A DNA stretch of 64,000 bases from Octopus sinensis (taxonomy: Eukaryota), in NCBI RefSeq assembly GCF_006345805.1, contig NC_043011.1, positions 65,298,464 to 65,362,463 on the forward strand. Direction: 5' to 3'. This document shows, in pieces, positions 16,398 through 64,000 of the stretch (the first letter of the stretch is position 1; every line of letters starts with the position of its first letter). A program made the translations under genes and the position numbers. The notes beneath the pieces were generated by a model, which saw nothing but the letters and a program-made list of their open reading frames with translations, had not been told where the DNA came from and searched no databases.

Positions 16398-16430
<33 letters not shown>

Positions 16431-16567
16431 ATTGTGTGTGTGTGTCTGTGCGTGTGTGTACGTTTAGCATATACATCGTGTATGTTTTAAGCGTCATGTA
16501 TTTGACTCGTTTATAATCAATATACATAACATTAAATTAAATTGTTAATTTATTAGGGCTTCTGACG

Positions 16568-16688: not shown

Positions 16689-16757
<69 letters not shown>

Positions 16758-16983: not shown

Positions 16984-17029
16984 GCTACAGACGCGTTTCG
17001 GGGTATTGCTCCTTTTCAATGCACGTAGC
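16984..17029 (-). ncRNA. Type I hammerhead motif, U3-A8 variant, one stem II mismatch
   Basis: GUGCA-UUGAAAA-GGAG-CAAUA-CCCC-GAAA-C-GC-G-UC-UGUAGC. Confidence 0.6.
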
Positions 17030-17345
17030 CAGATCAGTAGGTGTCGCTTCTGACAATCTCTGTTCAAAGGTTTTATTTACCTAGCTTCGGTGGAATACAT
17101 CCACTTGTTTTCAATAATAGAAATATTAAAATTACTAAGTCTCTCTAAAAGATAACAACGGCAGCGTTCCCGGAAAATAATTGTTATCGCCATACTAATA
17201 TGGCATTCTTATAAAAATAAGAATAAAGCTGTCCGCTTATTAGCTCCATGAGGCCATCGCCTTAAGTTAGCTATTTGATACACAAACTGTATCCATATAA
17301 CCTTTGAACAAGGGAGGTCAGTGGCTCCACACTACTTGGCCGGAA

Positions 17346-17387
17346 GCTACAGACGCGTTTCGGGGTATTGCCCCTTTTCAATGCAGC
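17346..17387 (-). ncRNA. Type I hammerhead ribozyme, U3-A8 variant
   Basis: GCUGCA-UUGAAAA-GGGG-CAAUA-CCCC-GAAA-C-GC-G-UC|UGUAGC: 6-bp stem I, 4-bp stem II, palindromic ACGCGU stem III, GUC cleavage site between 17352 and 17351. Confidence 0.75.
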
Positions 17388-17484
17388 GTAGGCAGACCAG
17401 CAAAATTTAGATTCAAATGAATATGGTACTTAAGTAAGATGCACCAGAAATGTGTATATAAATTATCTATATAAATCCATTGGG

Positions 17485-19050
17485 TGATTATAATCAAAAT
17501 AAGCCACAAGAATAACAGTGGTAATTTGGTACGATCGTTTCACGCTACATCATTGTATTAAATGTTGTAAGTATTACAACAGATTTAAAATGCTGAGCCC
17601 TCATCAGCCATTAATAGGGGTTTTCCATTAATACATAAATTTTCATATCAATTGATAACATCATAGAGAAGTTAGATATATAGACAAAGATGTGAATTTC
17701 AATTTTAAATACATTTAAGGTAGTGGAGTTTATCAACTGACTGAAGAATATTCAGTTGTTTTGAACTGCTAGGTGGTTTTGAGAAGAATGAACAATTGAA
17801 AAGTTACAAAATAGATTGTATTTTTATTGCAATAAGGGTGAAATAGATGTCAAAATGACATATAAAGAAATTGAGGTAGAGAGAAAAGGGTTTTCACACT
17901 AAAGATTATTTTACTACTATTTGGCAAACAGATTTAGCATTAGGAAAACTAGATTAATGTCAAATGGTTATAATAACCACTCAAAGAGAACGCACAGATT
18001 TTTTAAAACTTATATACATCAACTTTATAATTAGCTAATAGGTTTTGAGTATTTTGATACGTTGGATTAAAGGAGAAATTATAAATCTAATATTTATTCA
18101 ATTTAGAGAAAAATCAATCACTTATTATGAGTAGGCATAATACTTATTAATTGGTGACAAAATTCTTAGTAATCAAGTGAATATATTAGGGGTCAAATAT
18201 ATAGAATAGGAAAAATAGAAGAGGAGTAATCAAAGAAGAAAGATATTCGTAGCTTTAGTAGAAGGTGATTTAATAATATGAAGAGAAGTAATTTAGAAGA
18301 GTAAATTACTCAGATTTCGTAGATAGTGAATTATAATTAATGAATTAAAATATAGAATCTGTTAGAAATAATATTTACTACCCGCGGAGAGAGGCTAATT
18401 AGTTAGGTAAAAATATCCTAGGTTAATGATATATTAAGAAATGGAAGTGAGATAATCAAGGTGAACCGAGTAGTTTCTTTAGGGACATAGACTTTATACT
18501 ATTTAGTATAGGAGAATATCAAAAAAAGGGAGAATTAAATTCTAAGTTTGCAAAGATGTATTTTAGTAATCTATGTATGGTGAATTAAAAGCCAGTATGG
18601 TATATTCATTCTTATTTGGTCATAAAAATTAAAATTTGAAAATTTTAGGAATAATCACAATATTATTATTTAAAATATTTAAACGTAAGGGTTGTTCGAT
18701 GTATGCAAGATATCCTAGCTCCGAACGGTTATTTAAAAGATTTGTATTACTCCTATGATTTAAAATTTCAGATTTCCATAGAACAAATTTCCCAACCATC
18801 CCTACTATTTTTATAAAGCCGTACTTTGTTACTATATCCTATTTCAGGTTGAATTCTATGTTATTCGTTTTCACTTCCCACATTTTCTAGACAATGTTCT
18901 GCAACCTGCTTTGTGTTTGAGCCTGAAGGAGGAAACATGTATTAATTGAAAACCTGTATTAATGGCTGATGAGTGCTCATCATTTTAAAACTGTTGTAGC
19001 GTGAAACGATCGTACAAAATTGTCAAACTTATACTTGTTGCTTATTTTGT
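17485..19050 (-). mobile_element. Old degraded PLE with short inverted terminal repeats carrying hammerhead motifs
   Basis: About 17485-17636 is inverted relative to about 18938-19050; both contain CTGATGA...GAAAC-GATC-GTA (17527-17610 minus, 18963-19017 plus); the interior is AT-rich and stop-ridden. Confidence 0.5.
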
Positions 19051-19442
19051 GTACATATATATATATGACTTTATATCATAATGAAAATTGCATTTAAAAT
19101 ATTTATATATTTATATAAAATTCAAACGAAACAGCTGATGGAAGGTGTGAACGCCATTTGCACCTGCATTTTATACCTAAGCCTCACCCAGGAACCACTT
19201 GAATTTATATTTTTAAAACTGGATTTGAAACTATACTTAATATAAATTGGAATCGTCAAGATGTTGATGAACTCCGATTCAGAATCCGCACATGACAATA
19301 CACATATATTCACATATTTAACTCATATACATATATAGATGTGAATATATATATATATATAAATATATATACACGCACAAACACGAACACACACAGATAC
19401 ACACACACATACACTCACACACACATACACTCACTCACATAC

Positions 19443-19585
<143 letters not shown>

Positions 19586-22500
19586 TTCTGTGTCACAAAG
19601 GATGTGTCTGAACCCAGAATGCAACCACCACCATCTGAAGGGCACAAAACGATCACAAAATAAATATAAACTGCAACAGAGGAAATCTACGACAACAACA
19701 AGAACAAAATACAACCACGTTTCATCTCCTAAAATCAAACAACGTAGACAGAACCATGAAAAAACTATAATACAAAATAATACCAACATGAAGTATGTAT
19801 CCTCTGACCAAGTGGGAAACCAAAGTGGTAACTCTTTTTTACTGACTTACCTAGAAAATATGAAGGCCGACCTAAGCCAGGAGATCCAACGAGCTATCAG
19901 CAACCACCTATGCAAATCACAAGGACCACACACCCACTACCAACAAGAAAATCATACACACACAGCTCCATAAAAGAACTACCCACATTGTTACCACTGA
20001 ACATCATGAAATATAACTTAGAACATTGGAAACATCAAACATCCCTTACCTCCACATTCCTGTTAAATGTACGTGGCATCGACCCATCAATTATTTCCCA
20101 AAAATGGAAGATCCCATATATAGAGAGTTGGCTTGCCGAAACGGCACATTACATCCCTTTCTTTATCCTTACCGAGACACACCTGAACAACACCCTTATG
20201 GACGCCGAAATGAAAATAAAATATTCCATCATTGTTCGTGCCGATCGCACAGACCGAAATAAGGGAGGGAGAGCCATCTTTATCCATGACTCCTTTTCAC
20301 TTGATGCCAAGGACATATTTTCCAACTGCTACTGTGAATCGGTATCACTATTCAGCAAGGCCAAGGACTTAATCATTGTTGGTCTTTACAGGCCTCTCCA
20401 AGCAACTCTAAATTGCTTTGACGAGGGCCTTAGCAAAGTCAAGTCCTTCCTTCGGAAGTACCACTCCGGAAAAATACTAGTGATGGGTGATTTTAACCTC
20501 CCTCATGTGAACTGGCCCACAAATACTCTGAAGTTAGGCAAATGTTCTACATCAGATAGAAAAGCAGCAGAACTGCTCTTTAATCTAATGGATGAATACT
20601 TCCTGACTCAGCTAGTGCTCGAACCAACGAGACAGAATAAAATGATCTTGGATTTGGTATTGACGAATCACTCTAGCTTCGTTCACAGTATTTCAGTTGA
20701 AAAAACTCTCCTCTCAGACCACGACATGGTACTCTGCAATTTCAATTCCCGACATATAAAATCCAAACCAGCCATGCCCACTCCATGGCACTCATTTGAC
20801 AGCATAAACTTCCACAAATCGGAGTGGGGAGCAATCAGAAAGGATCTGTCTTCCAGCGACTGGTCTTTTACTCTCAATTCCTCCCATATTGAGACCGCGT
20901 GGCAGCACTTTGAATACATTGTCACCTATACATGCTCTAAAAACGCTCCCACGAAATCTACTAACACAAACAGAAACCGGCTCCCTAACAAGAAAAAAAA
21001 AACCCTCATCAGGCGCATCAAAAGACTCATCAACAAAAATAAACCAATTAAAATAATCCCCCACACAAAACATCCACATTTAACAACAATGAAAAGGCTA
21101 GAGCTGGAAAAACTTCTTCTGCAGACCGACATGAAAACATCCATTGAAAATCTAAGAGCTTTGGAGGAACAGTGGGTAATCAAAAACATCAAACAGAACC
21201 CAAATGTGTTATATTCTTATGCAAATAAGCATAGAATCAGTGTCTCACCCATTGGCCCATTGATTGATGATAACTGCATTCCACAACACGATGCTAAAGA
21301 AATAGCAGAAATGCTGCAGAAACAATACTGCTCTGTCTTTAGTGTTCCCACTGATTTTGACGCAAGAGAAGCGAACGAAGTTGACTCCCAACATAAAATC
21401 TCAGACACAACCTTCACTGCCACTGACATCGTAGCAGCAATAAGTGAGGTCAAATACTACACTTCTGTAGGCCCTGATAGATTCCCCGCTAGTCTCCTGA
21501 AGGAATGTAAACACCAACTTGCAGTCCCTCTGACCAACCTCTGGAGAAATTCGTTAGATGCAGGTTATAACCCGAAACAGTTTCTATCCCAGTCGGTCAT
21601 CCCGGTTTTCAAAGAGGGAAACAGATCCCTCGCAGTCAACTATCGCCCAATCTCACTCATCTCCCACATCATTAAAGTGTTTGAAAGAGTGTTAAGATCA
21701 AGGATAGCTGACTTCCTGGAGACCCACAAACTCGTAAGTGCAAATCAGCATGGCTTTCGCTGTGGCAGGGACTGTATAACACAGCTCTTACACCACATTG
21801 AAGATGTACTCAAAGACTTGGGAACAGGTTCGAACTCTGACGTCATATATCTTGACTTCAGTAAAACGTTCGACAGTGTAGACCATAATATCCTACTCTC
21901 AAAATTGGCAATTTATTAAGTATTTCCTGGCGAATAGAACACAACATGTTGTTGTTCATGGAGTCCACTCAAGCCCAGCAAAAGTCACCAGCGGTGTGCC
22001 CAAAAGGACTGTCTTGAGTCCGCTACTCTTCATAATTTACATAAACGACCTTTCCAGTGTCGTATATTACTGCAAAGTGAAAATATTTGCAGATGAGACT
22101 AAACTCCAGCAAATCGTCAATGAAGAAGCAGACCGAACTCAACTCCAGTTTGATCTATATGCTGTGAGTCAATGGGCAGACAGAAACATAATGCAACTGA
22201 ACGAGGGACAATTTGAGCTGATGCATTTGGAAGAAATTCCTCGTTAAAACAGCCATGCTCTCTTCCTTCAGCGGAACCGCTCACAGCCGCTAAAGCCTTG
22301 AAACTCTACTCCCTCAAGCACCGACGTGAGCGGTACATCATTGGTACGATGTGGAGAATATACCACCAACTTTGCCCAAACGACCTTAACATTAACTTCA
22401 AGGGTCATCCAAGACTGGGACCACGGGCCATACTGCCCCTGCCCAATTCAAGATCACAGCATACATGTACACTGCAATATAATTTCTTTTCCAAAACAGG

Positions 22501-26145: not shown

Positions 26146-29100
26146 CACTTTTTTTTTTCTTCTTTCAAATTTGCTTACATTTCTTGCCGGGTGTCTTCCC
26201 GACTCCTAGGGCAAAGAAACTCATAGTATACATTGGTAGGCCATTAAACCAAACTCAATAGTTCGTTCATTTATTTATTCTTTTTTAAGTTAAATTAAAA
26301 TACATGAGCAGCAACAGTTCTCACATCGACAATGCTCTTCTCAATACGTGTGATGTACCAGTTAAGATAATCTTTTGCACTTCTTGCAGGGATGGTAAGC
26401 CAGGGATCATTCTCATATAATTTTCGGTTCCTTTCTTGATCATTCCTATTGCTCTTACGATTACTGGTATTGTAACCGCCTTGAGATGCCAAATTTTCTC
26501 AATGTCAATGGGCAAGTCTTTATATTTTCTGAGATCACAGGGGATGCTCATGTCGATCAATAAGCGAACTTTATTGTTTTGGTCTTTCACAACAATATCT
26601 GGTTTATTGGCCCTGATGGTTCGGTCTGTATGTACTGGAAAGTCCCACAGAATGGTTACATTTTCTCCTTCAGTTACAGCCTCAGGGTGGTGATTATACC
26701 ACATGTCGGCAGTTTTGATATTGTAATGCCGACTTATTAGCCAGTGTAGATATTGGGCAACTCTGTCATGTCTTAATCTATATTCCACTGGTACTAAGAC
26801 TTTACATCCAGAGATTAAGTGGTCCACTGTTTCAATCATGTCGTTGCAGAATCGGCATTTTGGGTTTGCTCCATTTTTCATCACATTGGCCTGGTAGTTC
26901 CGGGTTAATAGGCTTTGATCTTGAGCAGCCAGGATGAAACCTTTTGCTCTCTGCTTTTAGCCCTGAGCTCCGTAGCCACTGATGGGTTTGCTTCTGGTTA
27001 ACATCAACTTGTTTGCTGCGGGCCACATAGTTGCCGTGCAGAGGTTTCTCCTCCCACCTATAAGCCAATTGCACCTGCGCTTTTTTCGTTGCCATTAGTT
27101 TCACCTTCTTAGCAACAATAGTTGCCGTACTTCCCTCGGGTTGTTCAGTTTGGGTATCCTGCACGAGATTAATAGCAAATATTTTGCTTTCCTCTATGAT
27201 AGAATGAAGCTTCTTTAGTCTCTCGTAAATTTCTACGGGCTTTAGCATCCAGTCATTCGTTATTTCGAGATATTTGGCCAGTCCAATTGTGGTTGCTTTG
27301 TAAGCTAGTTCAAATTGGATCAGGCCCCGACCTACTTAGGCTCTTGGGAGGTAAAGGTAATCTACGTCTGCCTTTGGGTGGTGCATCCTATTACAACTCA
27401 GCAGCTTGCGTATTTTCCAATTTATATTATTTACTTCACTCATATTCCAGTTCAACACATTGTAGCTATAAGTAAAAAGTGGAACTGCTAAGGAATTTAT
27501 AGCTAACACCTTGTTACGTGTATTTAGTTCAGATTTCAGTACTGCACGAGCTCTACTATAACATTCCTTCCTGATCTTCTCTTTCATGCTTGCATGCTGA
27601 ATACCAGAGCCTTCATTTATCCTAAATATTTCTATGTTTGTTCTTGCTCAAGCTCTCTTATGACTGTGTCAACATCTAACACGACTGAATTTGTGGTCTT
27701 CACTTTCCCTTTCTGGAAAGTGGCCTTGGCACACTTCTCAAGTCCAAACTCCATCCCGATATTATCGCTGAATGCTTTCACAGTGCACAATAGGCCTTCA
27801 AGTTCATTATTGTCTTTACCATAGAGTTTTAAGTCATCCATATAAAATAGATGGCTTATTCTATTATTGGCAATTTTATACCCATACCCTGTTCTGTTTA
27901 ATTAACTTGTAAGGGGTATTAGGGCTATGCAAAATATTAAAGTTGAAAGTAAGTCACCTTGAAAAATCATCCAACAGTCGATGTTTATATTCTCTGAGGC
28001 AAGTACTCCATTAGAGTAGTATAATTGGAGATTCGTATTCCACAACGACATATTGTGCTTGAGGAAGCTTGAAATCACAGGGGAAAATTTTGAAGATGTC
28101 CAGCGATATCAAGATCCATGGATGCGGTATACTGTCGAATGCCTTTCTATAGTCAATCTATGCCGAGCTTTGATTTCTGCGCTTGTTGTGACAGTTCTCA
28201 AGGATTATACGATTAATTAGCAATTGGTCTTTGCATCCGTATGAGCCTCGGCGGCACCCTTTTTGTTTAATGGGGAAAATATCGTTCTTCTCCATGAAAG
28301 CATATGTTTTCTCTGCCAGGGTAGATGTTAGAATTTTATACGTGGTGGACAGACAGGTTATAGGCCGATATTTCTTTGGAAGGTTGGTTTCGTTACTCTT
28401 TGCGAGTAAGTAAGTAATACCACTTGCTAACCATTCAGGTGTTTTCTTTGTGTCTCTCATAATTCCATTGAGCAGCTGAACTAGCTTTCCGTGTGCGCAT
28501 GGGAGCGATGCGAACCAGAAATTCGGCACCCTATCTTTACTGGGGGATTTCCAATTATGGGCCTTCGTGAGTGCCTTTCTTAGGTCTGCTATTGTAATAT
28601 CTTCCCATGCTTGTTGTTGTAAATTTTGGTAGGATCCTTCAGTTTGTATAATCCAGTCTGCATTTATGTTGTACGTCTTCTTGTCACTCCAAATCATTTT
28701 CCAAATGTTTTGAACTTCTTCCATAGGACAGGGGTCTTTAACAGTTACATTCTCCTTCCCTTTTTTGGCATTGGATGTAAACAGCTTATTTTGCTTGTAA
28801 AACTTGTTTCTCTTCTCAAATCTTCGTATTCTTTGAGCTTTTGCTTGGGCATTTTGTTTCAGCGTTTCTTTTATTGATATCAGTTCTTCTCTTGGTGAGA
28901 ATCCAAATTTTCTCTTCATCTTTCTTCCTGTTCTGGATCTTACATCATTTCCACATATTAGTTTATTTAATATTGATATTTCCCCACTCATATATTCAAT
29001 CGCTTTTTCAATTTTACTTCTCCAGGTTCGATTTCCTCCCAGGTTTCTTTTCCTTAGTTATTTGGGGGGCATACAGCTGGTTGCAATTGCCCTAGCATAA

Positions 29101-29971
29101 GCGTAAATAATTTCATTTAACTCAGTAAAATCAGGTTTTAATTCTTGTATTACTTCATTTGTTACATAGTTGCCAATTTTGATTTTTTTTAAATTTTGGT
29201 TTGTATTTGATAGTTTATGAAGTTGTTCTCTATCATTCATACTTGTATGTCTTACAACTTCAAGCGTATTCATTATTTTCTGCCTCATTTCTGCCATAGA
29301 CTCTCTGTGTTCTTCAGCAAATGCGAGATCTTCAGTTACTGTTGTTTTATCATTTTCCTGACTCTCTTTAACAGGTTCAATAGAATTTCTTGTATCTTCA
29401 GGCCTTTGCGTACTTTGGTCAGATGGCAGTCTTTCAATTAAGCCTCGTGGCGGGCTATACTGTTCTTCTGCTTCTTCATTTCCTTTGTGTCTTATATTTA
29501 TGTCATTTTCCGTTGCGTGCTTGATCGCGCTTATTTCACTGTCTGTGAGTCTGTTATTTCTAAGGATATCCATCCTCACATTTGCCAACTTGTTCTCGTC
29601 CAAATAGGGCCTACTGTCTTGATTCCGTGTTCTCCATATACTGTAAGAGTTTGGTGGTTGTGGTGGTCAACTTGGAGGGCTCGAGTTGGGAGTTTCCCGT
29701 TCAAGTGACCATCCATGTCCGTATTCGGAGAAGAGTTTGTGCCAGTTGATGACTTTTCGATCCCAGGCTGGCTCTTCCCAGGCGGACGCGCTTCCAGATT
29801 AACCATAGGACAAGCGATTTGGTATACTGATTTAGTTTTCCTTTTAGTTTCCAAAAACATTTTGGATGCTATGATAATGTTATCATTTTTTGAGCTTTGA
29901 GTGGCCCGTGGGGAGACGGCCATCATTGCCGTTACAATTATAGTCGTACCTTCATAGCAGCCGTAGTCGGC
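26146..29971 (-). mobile_element. R4/Dong-clade non-LTR retrotransposon (copy A), near full length, degraded
   Basis: N-terminal NKLANVRMDI; RT (YRPITCL..TYK, QKGCRRGSYGCKDQL, YMDDLKLY); CRFC..ETVDHL..GC knuckle; RLE NKPDIV..LID; 3' end abuts (TAA)n at 26087-26145. Confidence 0.9.
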
Positions 29972-34095: not shown

Positions 34096-37000
34096 TAGTT
34101 TTATTTTTATAGCGTGCTTTCACTTCACTACCGAGCGCAGCTCTGTGTGCCTTGGGTATGTGTTGAGATTTTTTGTGATGCTCTGATGGTTATTGTATGG
34201 AAAGTGTTCTGCGTAGGATGTGTGCAGTGCCTAGTAGTGCAATTTTCTCTATGTTATATGTGTTTGTAAGTCCTGGTGTTTTTGTTATGTATTTGTCTGA
34301 ATATTTTTTTATCATTCTTAATGCACCTACTATGATAGGAATTGTTTCTGTTTTCAGATTCCACATTCTAGTTACCTCTATTTCCAGGTCTTTGTATTTT
34401 GAGAGTTTCTCCATATCTTTTAGAGACACGTTGTCATCAGCCGGTATTGATACATCAATTAGAAAGCATTTTTTTTCTTCATGGTCTCTGACAACTATAT
34501 CTGGTCTGTTGGCCTTAATTTCTCTGTCTGTGTGTATCGTCATATCCCAGAGTATGGTTGCTTTCTCGTTTTCTGTGACCTTTTCTGGTGTGTGCCTATA
34601 CCATCTGTTTTCTGTTGTTATTCCATAATGTTGGCATAGCTTCCAATGTATGTAGGTTCCAACTCTGTCATGTCTGTGAATATATTCCTTCTTAGCCAGG
34701 ACTGGGCAGCTAGAGATAATATGATTTATTGTTTCTTGTCCATCCCCACATATTCTGCAGTTACTTGTAATATTTCTTTTCATTACATGTTTTTGGTAAT
34801 TTCTGGTGGGGAGGCTTTGGTCTTGTGCTGCAATTAAAAATCCCTCTGTTTCTGCTTTGAGTCCTGAGCTTCTCAACCATTGCTGGGATTTTTCTTTGTG
34901 TATTTCTTTTGCGTTTACTTTAGTCCAGTATTTACCATGAAGGGGCTTTTCTTGCCATCGTTTTATCATGGTTCGTTGCTGTTTTATTTTTAGTTTGGAT
35001 TTCATTTGTTTTATAGCTTTTGTTGTTTCTTCATCTTATTCTTCTTCTTCATGTTTATTAGGTGGTATGATTTCTTGTTTGTATTTGTCAGCTTCCTTAA
35101 TTACTGAGAACAGTTTTTTGTTTTGCTTGTGTTTTGCCGCTATCTGGATCAGTTTTCCTTCCTTCTGACGTACGTATTTTTGCACTCTTATGGTGGTTAT
35201 TTTATAGTAGTTTTCCAGCTGTCTAAGACCTCTACCACCTTCTATACGGTGTATATATAGTCTTTCTCTGTCAGATTTTGGGTGATGCATCCTAGATCCT
35301 GTCATTATTTTTCTTGTTTTCCAATCTATTTTGGTCAGTTCATTTCTTGTCCAGTTAAGGATATTGTAGCTGCAACTTATAACTGGGACAGCTAAAGTGT
35401 TGATACATATTATCTTGTTTTTAGCATTGAGCTCTGTGTTTAGTATTGATCTAACTCGTCTATAATATTCTTTTTTATTTTCTCTTTCACTTGTGTGTGT
35501 TGTGTCTTATCTAGTTCATGGATTCCTAAGTATTTGTAAGTTTGGCTTTGGTCTTTTATTTCATTGGTTTTATCTAGTGTGATGTTGTTACTCTTAACTA
35601 GTTTTCCTCTTTTCATGGTTACTTTGGCGCATTTTTCTAATCCAAATTTCATATCTATTCCTTTGGTAAATCCATGAACTGCCTTTAATAGTGTTTCCAG
35701 CTGTTTGTCATTTGTAGCGTATAGTTTTAGGTCATCCATATATAAAAGGTGGCTGATCGTTTTGCCGTAACATTTATATCCGCATCCAGTTCTATTTAGC
35801 ATATCAGATAGAGGTGACAGTGCCAAGCAGAAAAGGAGTGGATAGAGCGTGTCTCCCTGGAATATTCCTCTTCTAATGGGGATGTCTTTGGTTTTCATGA
35901 GTCCCTCTTTTGTTTGGAGGTGTAGGACTGTTTGCCATTTATTCATAGAGTGCTCTATGAATTTTATGATTGTTGGTGCTACTTTGTTAATGGCTAGTGT
36001 TTCGAGGATCCATGTGTGGGGGTGGCTATCAAACGCCTTTTTGTAGTCAATCCAGGCCATACTGAGGCTTTTCTTCTTTCTGTGGCTGTCTTCAGTTATG
36101 GCTTTATTAATCATTAGTTTATCTTTACAGCCATATGAGCCTTTGCGGCATCCTTTCTGCTCTTCTGGGAACAGTTTGTTTTCGTCCAGGTGCTTGTTCA
36201 GCTTTTGTGATATCACTGCAGTAAATGCCTTGAACATAGTAGGGAGGCAGGTTATTGGTCTGTAGTTTTCTGGTTTTACTGTTTCATTTGATTTGGGAAT
36301 TAAGATGGTTTTCCCCTTCGTGAGCCATTCAGGCATTGTCTCTGGCTCTGCTAGTACGTTGTTAAAGTTTTCTGCCAGCTTTTTGTGCATTCCTGTAAGA
36401 TATTTCAACCAGAAGTTGGGGATCCTGTCATGCCCGCAGTGCCTGGGTGACCTCTTCATTTGTTATGGGGGTCTAATGTTGTTCAGATGCCGAGTTTGTT
36501 ATTTTGATACTGCTTTTTTTTGGTGGTTCGTTCGCCGACCATATTTCTCTCCAGAATTCTTCCAATTCTTCTGCCGTTTGTGCTGCAGTGACTTCTATTT
36601 TATTTTTGCCCAGTTCTTGGTAGAACTTTTTGGGGTTGGAGTTGAACTTTTTTGTTTTCTTCAAAGAAGCGTTGGCGTTTCTTGTACCGGCGGATCCTTT
36701 GTGCTTTGGCAAGGATATCTTGCTTCAGCTTTTCTTTTATTTCAGGCAAATCTTTCTCTGTGATGTTATATTTGCGGAGTATTTTTGTTCTCTTTTTGTT
36801 GCTCAGTAGCGTTGATTGTTTGCTGATTTCATTAAGAATCGACAGGTCTTTTCTATGTTTTTTTTTTGCTCTGGATGTTATTTATCCACAGGGTTTGTTT
36901 GGGTCGTGGTACTCCAGTTTGGGCGGGTTTGGGTGAGTATCCAGCTTCTTTTTTGGCTGCAGTGGCTGCTGCGTATATTAGGTTATTTAGCTCAGTGATA

Positions 37001-38025: not shown

Positions 38026-38083
<58 letters not shown>

Positions 38084-38091
38084 CATTATTA

Positions 38092-38151
<60 letters not shown>

Positions 38152-38175
38152 TCTTATTACTATTATTATTATTAA

Positions 38176-38223
<48 letters not shown>
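38026..38223. repeat. (TAA)n/(ATT)n microsatellite; similar tracts at 26087-26145, 33598-33689, about 34020-34092 and about 39418-39478
   Basis: Read directly from the sequence. Confidence 0.95.
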
Positions 38224-38228
<5 letters not shown>

Positions 38229-54113: not shown

Positions 54114-54510
54114 TACAAGATAAGAAAACGGAGAAATAATCTAAATCAAATATCAATTACCAGATAATACTCAATCACATATTTTATTAAACCACCACAT
54201 AAGAGACTGTAGGGTTACATATAAAAGCAGAACAAATCAGTGTACGTACTTATCTACATGGCCGAAACAGCTGTAAGATGTAATCTATACTTATATTTAT
54301 ATTCTCTCTTTATATATATTCTACTTATTATACAGCATTACTTTTTTAGGTACACTTTTTTATGTACATTCATTTATGTACACTAATTTGTTCTGCTTTT
54401 ATATTTAACCCTACAGTCTCTTATGTGGTGGTTTAATAAAGTATGTAATTGAGTATTATCTGGTAATTGATATTTGATTTAAATGTATTTCTCCATTTTA
54501 TTATCTTGTA
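54114..54510. repeat. 132-bp inverted repeat with a half-hammerhead (GAAAC-AGCT-GTA) in the spacer; probable PLE terminus remnant
   Basis: 54114-54245 is inverted relative to 54378-54510; the CUGANGA half of the core is missing. Confidence 0.6.
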
Positions 54511-55450
54511 TATATATATATTATAATATATTATATGTTGTGTGTGGTGTGTGTGTGTGTACGTATTTATGTATTCTACATTAATGTAACACTATTATAC
54601 TTATACGAAGGGTACAAAAAAGGAGCCGGAAACGTTATCTGAGGGAGGAGCCCGTGGTAGTTAAGGCCGCAGAAATCTACCTCCATTTTATTATCTTGTA
54701 TATATATATAATATATATATATATGTGTTGTGTGTGTTGTGTGTGTGTGTGTACGTATTTATGTATTCATACATTAATGTAACACTATATATACTTATAC
54801 GAAGGGTACAAAAAAGGAGCCGGAAAAGTTATCTGAGGGAGGAGCCCGTGGTAGTTAAGGCCGCAGAAAGAAATCTACATCTTGCGTCCACGGGAGAGTC
54901 GTTCTAAATTGTGGTGCTTCTTTGTTTTGCAGTCCCCGCAACAAGTTCAGCGATTCGTGAGATGGCTCAAAGAACGAAAAGCTGGCTTCCGTGAAAGTCT
55001 TTTTTCTGCTGAGGAGAACGGCGCCGCGAGAAGCGTTTCATATTTCAAAAGGACATGAGAAAAACCCCTAGTTTATAAGTGGTTTCTATACTTAAAGAAT
55101 GCTAAACCGTTGCTTGAAGACCAACCTCGTTACGGTCGAATGTCGACCTATAGAACGAATGAAAAGTTCATGAATATTCGTGAACTAATCTTGAAGTAAC
55201 GCCGCCACCAAGAAATTGACCTTCTTGTTAAACTGAATTATATATCTTGGTTATTTCTGCCAGCGAAATTTGAACGACGATTTGCGACTGAAATGAGTTG
55301 CAGGAAAATATGTGCCACGCTTACTGACGGAAAACCAAAAACAGCCAGGAATGAACGCTTGTTGTGAAATGGAAAACATTTTAAAAACATTTGGAAATTG
55401 ACAATGATTCGAAGACCATCAATGGTGAGGAAAAGGTGATGCTAAGAATT
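54491..55450 (+). mobile_element. Old mariner remnant whose left end lies in a 190-bp tandem duplication
   Basis: TA-cgaagggt terminus at 54606 and 54800; degraded LEDQPRYGR.ST and KYVPRLLTENQKQ motifs. Confidence 0.65.
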
Positions 55451-56164
55451 ATGCCGTTAATGAGAAGGTGAAGAAACATCATTGGGGGTGTTATTGTTTA
55501 GTGTATAATCTTCTACAGAGGTTCACAATATCCCAATAGTGAAAATGTATCTGGACCACTGCAATGTTTAAATGGAGAATACTCTAAAATGCATAAAAGT
55601 GTAAAAAAGTAGAATGAAATAATTTGAAATCGTCCCGTTTTTTGTGTGTGCACTCCCTTGTTTAAATATGTAATATAATATGTTACACATATATATATAT
55701 AAATATATAAATATGTGGTCTGTTCCCCATCCATTTCAACGGACGGCTTAAAACCAAATCGAAATCAAGATTATATGGTAATAAACAGCCAAATTAGTGT
55801 CTTTAATATATAAACACACAGATATCGACACCCACCCACACACACACGCACGCACACACAAACACACACAAACACACACACACACACACCCACACACAGG
55901 GACATTATACACTTTATATAGATAAATCAGGGCTAATGCTTGTGTCAAATACTGTTAAATTAGCAGTTGAGTACTAATGCTATGCTACTTAGATAAGAAC
56001 TGTGTTAAGACAAATATTCCGTACTTTTTCAAGAAAGTTATCCCATGTGTTGTCAATAGTCAAATTATCTTTAAATATATAAAACTGAGAATGTGTATCT
56101 TATCTGTCTGTCTGTGCCTTCACTAAAACCTGATAACTACACAACAATTTCATTCAAATTAACA

Positions 56165-56274
56165 CATGGCTACTTAGGGCCCGAGGTAGTGAGTGTCAAC
56201 TGGAAAAAAAAATGTTCAATTTTGCCTAGAGCCGGCCCATAGCAATCTCATAGTGGGTAAATAAAGAAAAAAGA
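56165..56274 (+). mobile_element. 3' stub of a Tx1/L1-type element
   Basis: Ends tagtgggtaAATAAAgaaaaaagaa, matching the 3' end of the unit ending at 59660 (tagtgggtAATAAAgaaata). 5' boundary approximate. Confidence 0.5.
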
Positions 56275-56283
56275 ATTGACAAC

Positions 56284-57991
56284 GGTTCGTGTTTTTTTGC
56301 TCTTAAATTCGGTTAAAAAAGAAAAAAAGCGTTGTTGTTGTTGCTCTGTGGCATTGTGGAATGGCGGTGATGCGGGTTTCGCGTTTCGCTGGTTCTGCGC
56401 GTTACACTTTTTCTGTTTTGGCGGCCGTTTTCGGTCGGTCAGACAGAAGGAAATGGACTATGAGTCTCTAACAGACTTGTCCACGACAGATGAGGAACTG
56501 GAACAGGCAGTGACAATGAAGCTGATGGGAGATAAGGCTGGAGTTTTCGAGTCTTTATCAGACATGTCTACGTCTGAGAATGAGCTAGAAATGGCAGCGA
56601 GGAAATTGGAACAGAAGCTGGGTTATACCTATGCCGGTGTAACCAAGAAGGCTGAAGAGAAAGGGGTCGACTTGGCCAAGCAGCCAAGTTACCAGAAATA
56701 TATGAAAAAAGGAAAGCGGTGAGGTGGTGGAACTAGCACCGACACCAGGAGAAAAGAATGGTATGATAAAAGGACCATATTTACAGGGTGTTCGCAAACG
56801 AAGGGAAGAGGGTAGGAGTTGTAACCATGGAGTGGATAGAGGAGGCCCTGCGAAGAACGGAGGAGGAAATTAATTTTCTGACTCGAGGAGTCCGCTGTTT
56901 GAGCGAGGAAGATGGCGGCGAAGGCGGTGAAGTCAGAAAAGGTAACACTTTTTACCTAGTATTTGAATAGAAGGATTACACGAATAAGGGTAGGGAGTGC
57001 CACCAAAACGTGGAGGCAGAGTGGATTGTGGCGGCTGTGATCAGCGGCCACGAGGAGGAAGTGGATATTCTCCATGCCTCGGTTAAGACCGAGGGCTGGA
57101 GAGGCGTAACAGTGGAGCTGAACGTGCAGGTAGAGAACGAGGTACTGGTGGACCTGGCGGAAAGCATCAGATTGGGAGAGGTGATCATGAGAGTGTGGGT
57201 GGAGGGCAGAGTTCCACGTTGTTACAAGTGTGGCCTGAGGGGTCACATAAGAGCCTTCTGCCCTCCCCCAGGGAAAGAAATGGATTCCGAACCACAGAGA
57301 GAGAAGCAGAAACCAGAGGAGAAGGAGACAGTAGAAGAGGAAGAGAATTCACAGAAATGGAAGGAAGCTGGAAATAAGAGGAAGAGAAGAATACGTGGAA
57401 AAGAAAATAACATGGAACACCAATCCACCCCAACACCACCCACACCCTCTGATTCCCACCCTATCCCTGCAGACAGTGAACCCACCCGCTCCCCCCAACA
57501 AGAAAACAAAAGAAAAAAAATAATACAGACAGACAAGAGATTGAAATCGAACCCAGGCCGTACATTTGTACTATGACTGAACAGAAAGAAGTTAAAAGTC
57601 TAATGGAAGAGTATAAATGGTATGAAGTTGGTGAGACTAGGTATGCTGTGATTGAAAAGAAGAACATAGATGAATTTATGGTGAGGTGTGAAAGGGAAAA
57701 TTGGGAGGTGAAAGATATAAGAATGAGCGAGGAATTCGTGGAAAATATGGATGAGTATTTCGGAGTAAGAATGGATATGGAATTTATTCGTATTGGGAAA
57801 GAACATTCAAGTGACGGTGAAAACCAAAGGACAGGTAAGTGATGCTAACGAATGGGGCCTTTAGCATCGCTTTCATATTATCATTTTTTCATGTAACAAT
57901 TCATCCTTCATAAATTTAATTGTAATGTTCTATGTCCCCATGTCTTGTAATGTCCCCTCTTCGTTCGCCCCTTGTGTGTAATAAAGAAATA
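56284..57991 (+). mobile_element. ORF1-only Tx1/L1-derived element (HAL1-like), unit 1, frameshifted
   Basis: 5' gtgttttttt leader; ORF1 pieces 56453-57842 with EGRVPRCYKCGLRGHIRAFC knuckle; no APE/RT; AATAAA at 57980 and short A tail. Confidence 0.85.
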
Positions 57992-59660
57992 GTGTTTTTT
58001 TGCGCTCTGTGAAATTCGGTTAAGAAAGAAAAAAGAACAAAAAGTGAATGGTTGTTGTTGTGAAATTTTGAACGTCGTTGATGCGGTTTCGCGTTTCACT
58101 GGTTCTGCGCGTTGCACTTATTCGGTTCGGAAGGCCGTTTTTCGGTCTGAGGCGACTATGAGCCGCCTCTACCAAACGGATGAGATGGAAGGGAGAAATT
58201 TCTCTGAAATTTCGTCGACATCTGAGGAGGAGTTGGCGGTGAAAAAAATGGAAAGCACCTATGCAGGTATAACGAAGAAGTCAACAGAAAAAGAGATAGA
58301 CCTGGCTAAGTTGACGGACTTCCAGGAGTTCATGAAGGAGGAGGAGAACGGTGAGGATGAGCTGTTGCCTCTAGCAGGGCGCGGAGACTGGTTCCATCGT
58401 AGAACCATTAAATATAAAGCATTTATGAATGGAGGTAGAAAAATGGAAGGGATTAACATGGAAGCAATTGAAGAGGCTTTCAAACAGACAGGAGAAGAAA
58501 TTGTGTACATGACAAAAGGATTAGAATATGGATCCATAACGGTACAATTTAAAAGTGAGAAAGCAGCCAGGAATATAGCAGCCAAGGTGGTGAGTACAGA
58601 AAAGTTTTACTTGTTCCCCTCGTATTTGAATAGAAGGACCACCAGAATTAGGGTGGTGGGAATACCTCCACACCTAGAGGGCGAATTAATAACGGCTGCG
58701 GTTATCAAATGAAATGAAGATAAAGTGGACATCCTCCACGCCATTATGAAATATGAAGGCGTGAGAGGTGCCACATTAGTAATGAACATACAGACGGAGG
58801 CGGAAGTTATAGGAAAGCTTACGGACAGTATAAAAACTGGAAACATTGTTATGAGAGTGTGGGTGGAGGGTAGGGCACCCAGGTGCTACAGGTGTGGCCT
58901 GAGGGGTCACATAAGAGCCTACTGCCCTCCCCCACCAAAGGAAAAAGAAAAGGAAATCGTCGCGGAAGCCCCAAAAGAGGAAAAAACAAAAGAGAACCAA
59001 AGGGAAAAAGAAACGACAGAAGAAGAGGAGATGCAACAAGAGTGGGAAGAAGGAAGAAAAAAGAGAAAAAGAAAGAAAAAGAAAAACGGTGCGAAGCCCC
59101 AACCCACCCCAACACCACCCGCACCCTCTGAATCCCACCCTTCCCCTGCAGACAGTGAACCCACCCGCTCCCATCCAACAAGAAAACAAAAGAAAAATAT
59201 ACACAGACAAGTGTTTGAAAACGAACCCAGGCCGAACATTTATATTATGACTGAACAGAAAGAAGTGAAAAGGGTAATGGAAGAGTATAAATGGTATGAA
59301 ATAGGTGAGACCAGATATGCAGTGCTGGAAAAGAAGAATATAGATGAGTTTGTGTTGAGGTGTGAAAGGGAGAATTGGGACGTGAAAGATACAAGAATGA
59401 GTGATGAATTCGTGGAATATATGGAGGACAGTTTCGGAGTAAGAATGGATATGGATGGTCTTCGTATTGGGAATGAACATTCAGGTGACAGTGAAAACAA
59501 AAGGACAGGTAAGTGGTGCTAGCGGATGGAGCCGTTGGCACCGCTTTCATATATCATTTTCAAAATTCATTTTACTCATATCTATGTAATTGCGATGTTC
59601 CATGTCCCCAATGTTTGTAATGTCCCTTCTATATGGCCCCTAGTGGGTAATAAAGAAATA
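57992..59660 (+). mobile_element. ORF1-only Tx1/L1-derived element (HAL1-like), unit 2
   Basis: Same leader; ORF1 58158-59522; no APE/RT; AATAAA at 59649. Confidence 0.88.
58158..59522 (+). pseudogene. Gag-like ORF1 (454 codons with one in-frame TGA at 58710-58712): probable RRM-type region, CCHC knuckle, Lys/Glu/Pro linker, distinct C-terminal domain
   Basis: ORFs 58044-58712 and 58725-59522 share a frame; CYRCGLRGHIRAYC knuckle. Confidence 0.85.
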
Positions 59661-59879
59661 GGTCGTGTTTTTTTGCGGTTATTGTAAGTTGATATATTTT
59701 TGCTGTCGTATTATTATCTCTGTTATTCTCTACTGTTTGTCTACCTGTTTTGTATATTGCTGTCTAACTGTCGAAGTCAGCCTTCGCGCGAGGACTTCGC
59801 GTTTGTGTTCCCCCCTCCGTGGGGGAAAAATATCAATTATCTTGAAGTTACCAAGGGCTTGTGAAGCCAACTGTTCAAG

Positions 59880-61180
59880 ATGGAGTCCCCCTTCTCTGAT
59901 TCTCCCGTGAAGAGTGAAGAGGAGTATCCGGCGATGTCGCCAAGGAAAAAAGAGGCGGTGTCGCCAAAGAAAAAAGAGGCGACTTCACCAAAGAAAAAGG
60001 AAAACCCAGCACCTGCACCAGCTTCAGCGAAAAAAAATCTCTGAAGTGGCCGGTAAAAAGATTAAAAAAATAAATGTGGAAGATTTGGAAATATATGCGG
60101 ACTGTGTAAAAAAAGAGGGCACGGAAGTGACAGTGGTCACAAACGTCCAAAAACACGATGAAATAGAAAAAAAAAGAATAATTTATAAGACATTTAACAA
60201 AAAATTGAAGAAAAAAAATAGAGAACTGTCTTAAACCATTAATGGACAAAATAACTTACAGTAACAGAGGAAAGAGATACGGCACAGTGGAGGTGCGTTT
60301 CACTACAGAGGAAATAGCAAAAAAACTATCTATGGAGCCGATTAAAGCGGAGAACATTGTTCTCCTCCCCTTGTATAGAGGGAAAACAACATCGAGAATT
60401 ACGATGAACAACATTCCCCCATAGGCAGATGCCGAATGTCTGGTGGTAGCAGTGATGGTAGGCCTGGAGGAAAAAATAAACATCCTCCAGGCCACAGTGA
60501 AGGAAGAGGAATTTTGGAAAGGACAGAAAATAGTAATAGCCATTCAGGCGGAAGTTCAAACACTGGAGGAAATTCCAGAAACTTTAAAAATAAGTGAGGA
60601 AGAGAGAATAACAGTTTTCGTGGAGGGCAGAAAGCCGAGGTGCGTCGGCTGCGGCAAGAAGGGTCATGTAAGGGCGGAATGCCAACCCCAACCCAAGCCG
60701 CAGGAAGCACCTCAGCCAGGTGAAAAAGAAGATAAAGTGTCACAAGAAGCAGCGCCGGGCGGCCCAGAAGGGACGACTGAAGGTGTGGAGGTGAAAAAGG
60801 CAGCAGAACCAGCGGCGGAGGAAAATAAGGGCGAGGAAAATAAAAATGAGGAGGGGTGGGCAAAAATCACCAGAAAAAAAAAGAAAAACGGAAACCACCC
60901 CTCCCAGAGTGAACTTAAAAAGAAAAGAGAGTCGATGAACTCGTATATGGCCGTTAAGGCATCAAATAACAGACTTGGAAACGTATTGGCAGCTATGGCC
61001 AAAGTGGAGAGAATAGGGAAAAAGAACGACTATGTAGTTTACAGAATAGGCCGGAAGGATTACGGGCGGATAAAATCCGAATTCTTCCATGACGTAGGCC
61101 CACTTAGAATGGATGTGACATCTCCACATATATTCGAGGGCCTACGTCAGACTCCCCACGAGGCCCTGAAAAAGAGTTAA
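59880..61180 (+). pseudogene. Tx1 ORF1 (frameshifted) with N-terminal SPxK repeats and CCHC knuckle
   Basis: MESPFSDSPVK..SPRKK..SPKKK..SPKKK; aligns with units 1/2 over YG(T/S)..V.F...LP.Y...T.RI....IPP...EGR.PRC. Confidence 0.8.
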
Positions 61181-61228
61181 ACAAAGAAGAGAAAAGAGAA
61201 AACCGAACCACTGATATAAAGGTAAGTA

Positions 61229-64000
61229 ATGGATTACATTTATGTTGGTTGTTTGAATGTGCGCGGCCTGGGAGCAGGCTGGAAGCAAGGTCGCTTCCTG
61301 CATGATATCCGGTCGCGTAATTTAGATGTTATTGTTGCTACAGAAACCCGGTTAGAGGGGCCAAGAGGTCTACTCCTGCTGTTTTACGGCTGCGAGAGTT
61401 TTTTTCTCTCCTGGCAGTCCTACTGGCGGAAGTGGGGTGTTGGTCCTAATAAAAAGAAACCGGGTTTCTGAGAAAAAGTTAATTTTTGCAGATCCAGAAG
61501 GTAGGCTGGTCGTCATGGATTTGACGTTCAGTAACGGTAAAGTTATCAGACTGGTTGCAATTTACGCACCCAACCATACAGGGCAAAGTGATTATTTTCG
61601 TGAACTAGAAAACTTTCTTGGTACTTCTCATTCATTAGTTGTGCTAGGAGACTTTAACACAATTTGTAAAGCGGATGTAGATTGTGTTCGCTCGCGTTCA
61701 GATAGAAAAGTAACAGTGGCTTCATAGAACTGCTAAGCCGCTTTGAGCTAGCAGATCCTTATAGGCTGGAATTTCCGAACGCTCCATTGTGGACATGGTC
61801 AAAGAGCGACGGATCTTCCAGGTCATATTTAGATAGAATACTAATTAGAAAAGTAGACAGAAAAATAGCTAAGTGTCCACAGTTTTACCCGATCAGCTAC
61901 AGTGATCATAAAATGGTCACCTGTAAGCTTGACATAGATAAGGTTAAAAATAGAGATCCGGTTACTGGAAACTTAATACGTCCCTTTTGGCGATTAAGGA
62001 GTACAAAGACCGGATTAGGACTATAATTCAGAGGGCACTATCTGGTACCATCATTAATAACAAATGGTGGTACGCCCTCAAACGAGCCATCAAGTTCGAG
62101 TCAATTAGATATAGCATAGGAGTAGTGGCTAGAGAGGCTAGGATGGTAACTACTCTAGTTAAGGAATTAGAGGAAGCCTTGAAAACTGGCTCTGCGGCTC
62201 AGGTGGCGTCCAAGAGACTGGTTTTAAACCACCACCTCGAGGCCAAACACATGGGCTGCATTGTCAGGGCTAGGATCCGCGCAATAGGATGTGAAGGAAT
62301 CAACGCTGTGAGATGGGCCCGAGTGGTGGAAGCCAAGCGTGGTAACGATGCCACGATTCGATCTATGACGAAACAACAAGGTGAGTTGATAAACGAGCCC
62401 GAGGAGATGTGTGAGGCCTTTCAGGAGCACTTCGCTCAGCTTTTCGGTGAGTGCGGCGGACTGGATAGGAGGAGCGCCTTTACGGACCTACTCGACGGGA
62501 TGCCGCGCTTATCGGGGCGAGATGCGGAGGGCTGTGAAGGGCCAATCACGCCTGAGGAAGTGGTTGAGGCAATGGCGGACTGCGGCGCGGGCAAGGCGCC
62601 GGGTTTGGATGGTCTACCCTATGAGTTATATAAGAGTATGCCAGACTTGTTCGGGCACCTACTGGCGGAGGTCTATGCGAACTGGCAGCAGAACGAAATA
62701 TACCCAGATATGTGCGCCGGGGAGTAGTGACACTCGTCAGAAAGGACCCGAGCAAGGGGGAGTGCATTGATAAATTCAGGCCCATCACTCTGCTAAACAC
62801 AGAGTTGAAGATTTTGGCCAAAGTGTTATCGAAAAGATTGGCGCGTGTCACGGATGGTCTGATCGGGGAGGCACAGACATGTGCCGTTCCGGGCAGAACC
62901 ATTCAGGATAATCTCCATCTAATGCGGTATACTATAGAGGGTTTTAATAGTGATTCTGGCAAGCGTGGGGCACTGGTCCATTTAGACCAATCTAAAGCAT
63001 TTGATAGGGTCGACCATCGGTACCTGGTATCTGCCCTGGCACAGTTGGTTGATCAAGTTGGAAAGACAGCTCTTCTACTTCTTGTGGAAGGGCGGGAAAC
63101 CACTTGTGAAACGCTCTACTTGCTGTCAACAACCGTTAAAGGGTGGGCTAGGGATGCCTTGGCTGATGATAAGCAGACATGCGCTGAGGTTAAAACATCT
63201 GTGGCTCTACCTGGATGGTGAACGGGTGTGGTCTCCGCTAGCAAAACTGATGTTTCCCAAGTTCACTAGTTTCGGTGGATGGGAAACCTGGCTGAGTCGT
63301 AGATCGAAACTTGGTACTTGGTACACGGAGTGTCGCAAGGCTCTCCTGCTATTTCGTCGCTCAGGTAACGCTTGCGGTGGGGGTTCCACCACATTCTTTT
63401 ATAGAGGGTTGGTAGAGGCGGAATGTGAAGATACCTTGGGGGAAACCCTAGGTCTCGACGATAATCAGCTGGCCAGTCTGTTCCGACGTACGTTCAAGCC
63501 GAAGACACTGGACAACTTCCAGAAGTCTCTGGCATGGCAATGCTACAGAGGAGCTCTACCTGTTCGGGATAAACTCGCAAGGCACGGTGGCCGAGACAGT
63601 CCGATATGTCCAAGATGCGAGCGGGACAGGGAAACCGTTCCGCACGCTATTGTTCATTGTCCGGACGTGTCTGAGGTGTGGGTTTATGCCGAACAGCTGT
63701 TGTCAAGTACATGAAGAGTACAGCTGTCGACTGAGTCGATTACAAAAATTGACCCACCGGATTTCCTCGCGAATGAAGTTAAGTTTCGTTTTCTCGTTGT
63801 AGTAGCAATTGCGAAAGAGGTGATATGGAAGACGAGAATGAAAGGTCTACAATCAGGCAAGTTCATCTCCGGCCCTGGTTTGATGAATTATTTCATCTTT
63901 CACCTGAAAAGGAAGATAGGGCTGGAGAGAATATGCCTGACTAAGAGAGTGTATGAAGAACGATGGAAAGATGTAGCACGAAAGTTGCGAGTGAATGATA
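61229..64000 (+). pseudogene. Tx1 ORF2 (APE plus RT) with frameshifts and an internal RT deletion near 63045
   Basis: CLNVRGL, ATETRL, IYAPN, LGDFN, SYLDRI, SDHK; GKAPGLDGLPYE, RPITLLN, LDQSKAFDRVDH joined directly to LERQLFYFLWKG...GGLG. Confidence 0.9.

Follow-up and report, generated by a model that had tools for sequence, protein, structure and literature searches.

Probable members of an ORF1-only, non-autonomous LINE lineage stacked head to tail on an L1/Tx1-type element in Octopus sinensis

On the forward strand of contig NC_043011.1 of Octopus sinensis (NCBI RefSeq assembly GCF_006345805.1, positions 65,298,464 to 65,362,463), a stretch of 64,000 nucleotides hereafter referred to as the window, two related elements, namely unit 1 and unit 2, lie directly upstream of a long interspersed nuclear element (LINE) with two open reading frames (ORFs), here called el3. 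The two units carry a gag-like ORF1 without ORF2, and they are probably old and inactivated copies of an ORF1-only, non-autonomous LINE lineage of octopuses, the stack that they form with el3 being a decayed composite. This reading is carried by dispersed relatives of the units with intact ORF1s in two octopus species, by target-site duplications (TSDs) around their copies, by purifying selection on ORF1 and by a 3' terminus in common with el3. The comparison set consisted of seven loci, i.e., L001 to L006 in O. vulgaris and L007 in O. sinensis, which represent about 190 kb outside the window.

Organisation of the stack in the window

Direct reading of positions 55700-61400, six-frame translation and alignments delineate three related elements on the plus strand, which follow one another head to tail with junctions of 0-1 bp. 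The features of the stack are as follows:

56066-56252, plus strand: unrelated host repeat "U", the first 187 bp of a longer flank of the same name (82% identical to L001 4695-4881 and 77% to L005 8034-8230)
56253-56275, plus strand: 23 nt left over from the 3' terminus of a u-type element, GTGGGTAAATAAAGAAAAAAGAA, matching the conserved terminal module of the units, ..GTGGGTAATAAAGAAA
56276-57992, plus strand: unit 1, an ORF1-only element of subfamily u1, pseudogene, with 5' end TTGACAACGGTTCGTGTTTTTTTGC, ORF1 remnant at 56453-57842 and 3' end ..GTGTGTAATAAAGAAATAG
57834-57843, plus strand: GGTAAGTGATG at the end of unit 1 ORF1, with counterparts in unit 2 (59508-59514) and in el3 (61221-61231, GGTAAGTAATG, the ATG of which is the ORF2 start)
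57948-57992, plus strand: 3'-terminal module of unit 1, about 45 nt, with its unit 2 counterpart at 59617-59661 and found as well in el3 and in a further family, Y
57993-59661, plus strand: unit 2, an ORF1-only element of subfamily u2, 5'-truncated by about 14 nt, with ORF1 at 58158-59522
About 59662 to beyond 64000, plus strand: el3, a two-ORF L1/Tx1-type element starting with GTCGTGTTTTTTTGCGG, with a broken ORF1 (59880-61180) and a broken ORF2 (ATG at 61229)
63045-63046, plus strand: point at which 614 bp have been lost from within the reverse transcriptase (RT) domain of el3, from alignment with the L003 and L005 copies

In each unit, a gag-like ORF1 lies between a 5' leader and a 3' untranslated region (UTR) of about 150 nt, and the two units can be aligned from end to end with 72-75% DNA identity; a search of positions 1-56000 of the window returned no other unit copy. 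Their abutment is not a matter of chance since the same families abut in other loci. As for el3, its ends were defined by the copies of L003 and L005, which are full-length and measure about 5.2 kb, and the window stops about 274 bp short of its 3' terminus. Pfam identifies Exo_endo_phos, RVT_1 and zf-RVT in el3, which in the window are present as fragments; in the ORFs of the units, neither an apurinic endonuclease-like (APE) nor an RVT domain was found by Pfam, and tblastn with the el3 ORF2 protein gave no match below E=0.5.

An initial annotation of this DNA had proposed a head-to-tail, plus-strand array of two ORF1-only units on a two-ORF element, with units devoid of APE and RT, and both proposals are borne out, the former by alignment and the latter by the tblastn search. 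Of the spacing of 0-10 bp given there, the abutment stands and the range narrows to 0-1 bp. The AATAAA plus short A tail attributed to the units gives way to a fixed end, ...GGTAATAAAGAAATAG, with no homopolymer tail. The element stub placed at 56165-56265 was dropped: up to 56252 it belongs to repeat U, which shows no similarity to the 3' UTRs of the units and which in the O. vulgaris loci L001 and L005 sits about 350 bp upstream of other stacks, so that only the 23 nt at 56253-56275 resemble a unit 3' end, either as an extremely 5'-truncated copy or as the leftover of a deletion.

Nor is ORF1 complete in both units, as had been assumed. Relative to the intact ORF1 of L002 in O. vulgaris, unit 1 is wrecked by seven frame-shifting insertions or deletions, one of them a 23-bp deletion, and one premature stop; unit 2 is better preserved, with 454 codons from the ATG at 58158 to the TAG at 59520, a CCHC zinc knuckle reading CYRCGLRGHIRAYC and, as sole interruption, an in-frame TGA at 58710-58712. 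The ORF1 of el3 appears as three pieces in the raw frames, and alignment with an intact O. vulgaris ORF1, which is just 83% identical, reveals seven frame-shifting length differences and one in-frame stop. Its ORF2 is spread over at least five frames and the 614-bp deletion takes out most of the RT palm, the coverage of RVT_1 (205 profile positions) being restricted to positions 5-93 in the window compared with 5-204 in the L003 copy.

Dispersed relatives in octopus genomes

A protein search with unit 2 ORF1 retrieved seven "hypothetical" gene models of O. vulgaris, located on seven different chromosomes and all matching through the last ~90 residues. An exhaustive HMMER search gave 92 representatives (26 at E<=1e-10); nine of the ten matches looked up were from Octopus, i.e., seven from O. 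vulgaris, encoded on additional chromosomes, one from O. sinensis and one from O. bimaculoides, and a profile search for ORF1 relatives returned one further protein, from O. sinensis. Named ORF1 matches are exclusively from Octopus, and gene-model fragments are found on at least 12 O. vulgaris chromosomes. The related loci are interstitial, all seven being megabases away from contig ends (e.g., 32 Mb into a 119-Mb chromosome).

At the nucleotide level, unit 1 is 90-92% identical to the u1 copies of O. vulgaris in L001-L004, and unit 2 is 95.5% identical to the u2 copy of L005 and 93.7% to that of L001, its coding sequence reaching 97.4% identity with the intact 453-codon ORF1 of L005. As such, the closest relative of each window unit is a copy on another chromosome (88-97%) and not the neighbouring unit (72%), and in all three families the window copies stand as an outgroup to the O. 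vulgaris copies by 2-4%. Besides the intact u2 ORF1 of L005, intact u1 ORF1s of 468 codons (solo copy, L002) and 472 codons (copy 8 of L001) were found, together with a third subfamily, u3, represented in O. sinensis L007 by an intact ORF1 of 384 codons with 46-49% amino acid identity to u1 and u2. These ORF1-only elements measure 1.6-1.75 kb, and the knuckle of the unit ORF1s follows the pattern C-x2-C-x4-H-x4-C. Within the first ~25 nt of u1, u2, u3 and el3, a 5'-terminal motif ..CGGTCGTGTTTTTTT(G/A)CG.. can be recognised in leaders that are otherwise unrelated; in arrays, this CGGTCGTGTTTTTTT motif falls 10-20 nt past the AATAAA of the previous unit, the expected spot of a U-rich downstream poly(A) element.

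Regarding the encoded protein, Pfam assigned the unit ORF1s to no significant family, with no match to the RNA-recognition motif (RRM) and none to Transposase_22 at E<0.1. In the AlphaFold model of the O. sinensis protein P0128, which is moderate overall (mean pLDDT 60), residues 20-100 just before the knuckle fold as beta-alpha-beta-beta-alpha-beta with a pLDDT of ~80, and Foldseek returns generic ferredoxin-like/RRM matches at E>=0.02. Besides the CCHC knuckle, which can be read off the sequence itself, ORF1 has a charged linker and a small C-terminal domain, and the segment before the knuckle is probably RRM-like. The combination of RRM and CCHC in so-called Type I ORF1 proteins is associated with plant L1 and Tx1-group elements (PMC5203782), and the predicted unit protein fits this type, a consistency that falls short of proof.

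Insertion signatures and target sites

In L007, the solo u3 copy is bordered by a 19-bp TSD, CAGAAAYGTTAGCACGCCG, at 9439-9457 and 11056-11074, and joining its flanks in silico restores the intact head of an abundant tRNA-like short interspersed nuclear element (SINE). The same SINE-head TSD occurs three times in L004 (8600-8618, 10263-10281 and 12287-12305), where a unit and an element of family Y are adjacent; a separate copy of about 240 bp in that locus is 5'-truncated and has a 16-bp TSD and an A tail. L003 holds three u1 copies with differing 5' truncations, a common 3' end and the same 12-15 nt after each of them, and in L005 the u2 element, two Y elements in a row and el3 are set apart by partial copies of ACATGGAGGAAA. 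TSDs of 12-19 bp combined with variable 5' truncation are the signature of target-primed reverse transcription.

The SINE-head site is occupied in two species by three families, i.e., u3 in O. sinensis and u-type and Y elements in O. vulgaris, and about 12 empty SINE-head sites are present in the sampled sequence; at least four unrelated TSD sequences were encountered overall. This re-use points to a real site preference and not to strict specificity. The initial annotation had favoured a lineage over local deletion or duplication products and suggested looking for solo copies with TSDs and intact ORF1; such copies do exist in the sampled octopus loci and, together with the dispersed relatives, they support a lineage.

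Formation of the stacks

Three routes to stacking are observed. Firstly, the same nick site is re-used, with regeneration of the TSD between elements (L003, L004 and L005). Secondly, unequal exchange enlarges stacks into arrays: L001 contains at 5228-20835 nine u1 copies of 97-100% identity, with a 3-unit higher-order repeat of about 5.2 kb, copies 5-6-7 reiterating copies 2-3-4, and with recurrent junctions of two types (a,b,b,a,b,b,b), and L006 contains at 1-15651 a second array of at least nine u1 units, one 5'-truncated unit lying inside. Thirdly, an existing stack is copied as a block, as exemplified by the unit 1-unit 2 junction. Indeed, window positions 56251-59660 are colinear with L001 19057-22509 at 90.9% identity across this junction, with the same 5'-truncation point of unit 2, and the junction therefore arose once. 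The co-insertion of the units with their helper, as envisaged in the initial annotation, is not supported by this single origin followed by copying, nor by the stacks without helper in L001, L004 and L006.

Flanks U and/or D are common to L001 (4678-5227; 22510-23025), L005 (8017-8576; 18897-19402) and L006 (15653-16128), D being a decayed ORF1-like fragment that starts with ACATGGAGGAAAGC. The homology of these flanks ends in (AT)n tracts, the stacks between them differ and the loci lie on different chromosomes; the U/D site may be either a much-used docking site or one ancestral stack that was copied and remodelled. Orthology of the window with L001 was considered and not adopted because of the mismatch between their outer flanks, although the "U...D" composite may go back to a common ancestor.

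For the junctions of the window, which are devoid of TSDs, it could be argued that the stack was inserted in a single retrotransposition event, either by template jumping of the RT, yielding a concatemer, or from a read-through dimer transcript. Direct junctions of 0-1 nt, small 5' truncations and the lack of TSDs between elements are what this would produce, and the identical unit 1-unit 2 junction found in L001 among different neighbours implies that the dimer propagated as a unit; read-through is also conceivable because, after its AATAAA, each unit runs into the GTGTTTTTTTGC of the next one, a plausible downstream poly(A) element. Against it, template jumping does not yield the repeated TSDs seen between elements in L003, L004 and L005, unit 2 is followed in L001 by flank D and not by el3, so that unit 1, unit 2 and el3 did not arrive in one event, and block copying at the DNA level accounts equally well for the shared junction. 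On balance, a single event is considered unlikely, while it fares better than the other alternatives.

Alternatively, the units could be mere DNA-level tandem duplicates, i.e., a macrosatellite, of one internally deleted LINE copy. The arrays of L001 and L006 have plainly grown by unequal exchange, as reflected in L001 by the near-identity of the copies, the higher-order repeat and the recurring junctions, and flanks U and D are common to three loci. Such an origin nevertheless appears very improbable for the units themselves and is contradicted for the lineage taken as a whole: units 1 and 2 are much less similar to one another than to copies on other chromosomes, the TSDs of solo copies rebuild an empty SINE site, 5'-truncated copies keep a constant 3' end and ORF1 has been under purifying selection.

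Selection on ORF1 and age of the ORF2-less state

Selection was estimated on intact ORF1s by the Nei-Gojobori method with bootstrap intervals. Between u1 and u2, the ratio of non-synonymous to synonymous substitution rates (dN/dS) is 0.24-0.31 (bootstrap intervals 0.16-0.41, hence all below 0.42), with a dS of ~1, and between two u1 copies it is 0.40. For u3 compared with u1 or u2, dN/dS is ~0.25, the uncorrected pN/pS being 0.5 (bootstrap intervals 0.42-0.60). The initial annotation had called for dN/dS between units 1 and 2 and had named units confined to one place, with ORF1 nested inside an autonomous family and a dN/dS near 1, as the outcome that would speak for local products; neither the distribution nor the ratio is of that kind.

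The three subfamilies u1, u2 and u3 are separated by a dS above 1 and have 46-58% amino acid identity; in the two species, they nonetheless have in common one post-ORF1 joint, GGACAGGTAAG(T/C)GATG...GCTTTCATAT, and one 3' UTR. The ORF2-less state is old because three subfamilies in two species share these features. The simplest reading would be that ORF2 was lost once, long ago, and that u1, u2 and u3 then diverged while selection maintained the function of ORF1. Where ORF1 ends, the unit 1 sequence GGTAAGTGATG, which reads GGTAAGCGATG in u3 of O. sinensis, and its el3 counterpart GGTAAGTAATG mark a putative remnant of the ORF1/ORF2 junction.

In another view, every ORF1-only copy would stem from a recent internal deletion of its own in an autonomous element and would be dead on arrival, with no self-propagating lineage. 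Such deletions do occur, as illustrated by the private 614-bp RT deletion of the window el3, and HAL1 reportedly arose several times in mammals (PMC5753468). However, independent deletions do not fit with a single joint and a single 3' UTR in three subfamilies so far apart, and a u-type ORF1 attached to ORF2 was seen in none of the sampled loci; this explanation is a shade less credible still than a macrosatellite.

The end of ORF1 also bears on the gene models. The sequence AG|GTAAGT, a perfect 5' splice-site consensus, is present there in unit 1 (57834-57840), unit 2 (59508-59514) and el3 (61221-61227), directly before the ORF2 ATG in the latter; u3 has GTAAGC (L007, ~10899) and family Y is without it. 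The O. vulgaris models P0001-P0007 splice from the ORF1-end GTAAGT into the next unit or whatever adjoins, P0001 and P0002 consisting of three C-terminal domains in a row. Judging from their structure, the models over the units appear to be artefactual splices and their products spurious proteins. The idea that ORF1 is a domesticated, gag-derived host gene family in tandem, like mammalian L1TD1, and not a transposon, could draw on a dN/dS below 1 and on the partial coverage of ORF1 by gene models in the annotations of O. vulgaris and O. sinensis, but it is the least plausible of all given the many decayed copies, the TSDs, the truncated 5' ends, the 3' module of LINE type, the apparently artefactual nature of the models and the lack of a conserved single locus.

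The two-ORF element, family Y and the shared 3' module

The best-preserved el3 is the copy of L003 (990-6200, minus strand; that of L005 spans 13690-18900), where ORF1 is intact with 438 codons and ORF2 is near-intact with a single frameshift, and where Pfam identifies Exo_endo_phos (7e-14), RVT_1 (1e-30) and zf-RVT (8e-9). The best relatives of el3 ORF2 include a sequence of Argonauta hians at 58%, and L1-Tx1 families have been reported as recently active in O. vulgaris (PMC13282606). Family Y, of about 1.9 kb, has an ORF1 of 493 codons, intact in L003, with a CCHC knuckle and a lysine/glutamate-rich linker; it has no ORF2 and ends with the same 3'-terminal module as the units. Located directly 3' of u-type units in three loci (L003 10410-12334, L004 ~10282-12286 and L005 10268-13697), it is a second, independent ORF1-only family.

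The module was aligned from 13 copies of four families (alignment A2). The final ~45 nt of el3, ..TGTCCCATCTATGTTCGCCCCTTGTGGGTAATAATAAAACAAC, match those of the units, ..TGTCCCCTCTTCGTTCGCCCCTTGTGTGTAATAAAGAAATAG, the sequences upstream being unrelated between families, and the pattern TCT..CCCCT.GTGGGTAAT.A..AA shows little or no variation across u1, u2, Y and el3. As regards a conserved RNA structure in this module, no covariation was found and only a 4-bp hairpin is invariant. A shared 3' module is a feature of "stringent" LINE/SINE partnerships, and for this reason trans-mobilisation by an el3-like ORF2 protein comes as the natural interpretation of its presence here: the RNA of a unit would be bound by its own ORF1 protein, and an el3-like ORF2 protein would recognise the shared 3' module and reverse-transcribe the unit RNA in trans.

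The three el3 copies are themselves mosaic. Over the 5' UTR and most of ORF1 they are 72-88% identical, and identity rises to 94-100% in the remainder, i.e., the final ~150 nt of ORF1, ORF2 and the 3' UTR, which suggests replacement or recombination of the 5' UTR/ORF1 module, possibly fed by the stacks. More speculatively, and with a chance of being correct that we put well below even, ORF1-only elements may dock at the 5' boundary of resident relatives, the composites being then re-expressed or template-switched and serving as a reservoir of 5' UTR/gag modules for autonomous Tx1-type elements. Such a reservoir would account for the el3 mosaic as well as for a young 3' end behind old 5' parts in u1 and u2.

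Several points weigh against an old ORF1-only lineage mobilised by el3. Both units of the window are dead and el3 is inactivated alike, and with no TSD between the elements of the window their mode of origin is not directly visible. The case for trans-mobilisation by el3 comes down to the ~45 nt in common; moreover, the unit ORF1 has 32-36% amino acid identity to that of el3 and is no closer to it than to the ORF1 of Y, and therefore a family not encountered here may be the actual parent or helper. Between u1 and u2, dS drops to 0.17-0.25 over the last ~90 codons, which means that the 3' part has a younger common ancestor; through recombination or constraint at the RNA level, the 3' architecture could be partly exchanged, which weakens the argument for a single loss of ORF2. 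Finally, the related loci were found via gene models joining the last exon of a unit to downstream ORFs, a procedure that biases the sample towards stacks, and the ~190 kb constitute the whole sample for comparison.

Other features of the window

The window also contains unrelated ORFs of LINE-type endonuclease/RT at 5968-6933 (minus strand), 19910-21919 (plus), 26321-29603 (minus) and 34190-36459 (minus), and the region can thus be regarded as intergenic sequence rich in transposable elements. In addition, two repeats of a 194-bp unit, 95% identical, occupy 54491-54869 and a (TTA)67 microsatellite is found at 38026-38226.

Relation to known elements

The "ORF1-present bipartite non-autonomous LINEs" of Kojima (2018) comprise HAL1 in L1, HeT-A in Jockey and Ag-Sponge in CR1 (PMC5786205). 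With ORF1 kept, APE and RT absent, a shared 3' terminus and dispersed copies with TSDs, the octopus units are elements of this kind. Like mammalian HAL1, an L1-group derivative with a 5' region, ORF1 and a LINE 3' end, without ORF2 and with families of its own (PMC5753468; PMC5786205), they form their own families; unlike HAL1, which encodes a Type II ORF1 protein (coiled coil, RRM and C-terminal domain, i.e., Transposase_22) and ends with a poly(A) tail, they encode an ORF1 protein with a CCHC knuckle, possibly of a Type I-like kind, their terminus is fixed and not poly(A), ..AATAAAGAAATAG, and they occur in a mollusc, with site re-use and stacking. Having neither Transposase_22 nor a poly(A) tail, and with a host that is no mammal, the octopus units fall outside HAL1 as strictly defined.

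The resemblance extends to HeT-A, TART and TAHRE of Drosophila, where gag-only elements rely on the ORF2 of two-ORF relatives in intermixed head-to-tail arrays and where ORF1-only lineages spawn further ORF1-only lineages (PMC13534243). However, the fly elements belong to the Jockey clade, reside at chromosome ends and are added without TSDs, whereas the octopus stacks are of L1/Tx1 type and interstitial, with TSDs of the endonuclease type. To our knowledge, no stacking has been reported for Ag-Sponge. This element of Anopheles is also an ORF1-present bipartite non-autonomous LINE, but from a different clade, namely CR1 (PMC5786205).

From its predicted APE, RT and zinc-binding domains, el3 is assigned to the L1/Tx1 group of LINEs. 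In this group, Kojima and Fujiwara reportedly described in 2004 site-specific elements, i.e., Tx1L in Tx1D of Xenopus as well as Keno, Kibi, Koshi and Mutsu. The octopus elements are similar to Tx1-group LINEs in that el3 combines APE, RT and a C-terminal zinc-binding domain, a CCHC knuckle is present in ORF1 and one position of a repeat, i.e., the SINE head, is hit repeatedly; they differ from the site-specific ones in that the use of this site appears to be a preference and not a rule.

As to the arrays, double insertion of transposable elements in Drosophila results in head-to-tail dimers separated by a TSD, from which arrays develop by unequal exchange (McGurk and Barbash, 2018; PMC5932611). 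The nine-copy arrays of L001 and L006 can be likened to these, with double insertion followed by expansion, except that the stacked partners in octopus are often of different families (u, Y and el3). The papers retrieved by full-text searching list L1-Tx1 in octopus and do not mention ORF1-only elements or arrays (PMC13282606; PMC8967140).

Significance

To the ORF1-only LINEs of L1, Jockey and CR1, the octopus lineage adds a fourth setting, as if gag-only hyperparasites recur wherever LINE proteins are shareable in trans. Repeats are unusually abundant in octopus genomes, and a link has been made between the activity of LINEs in these animals and brain biology. Part of the octopus "L1-Tx1" signal is ORF2-less and arrayed, which bears on repeat annotation, age estimates and expression studies, and there is a problem of gene annotation as well, current O. 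vulgaris models apparently splicing ORF1-only elements into spurious proteins. If stacking does act as a module reservoir, octopuses would possess an equivalent, interstitial and dependent on an endonuclease, of the telomeric gag-only/helper system of Drosophila, and in any event the re-use of sites together with mosaic ORF1/ORF2 combinations offers a tractable case of LINE module exchange.

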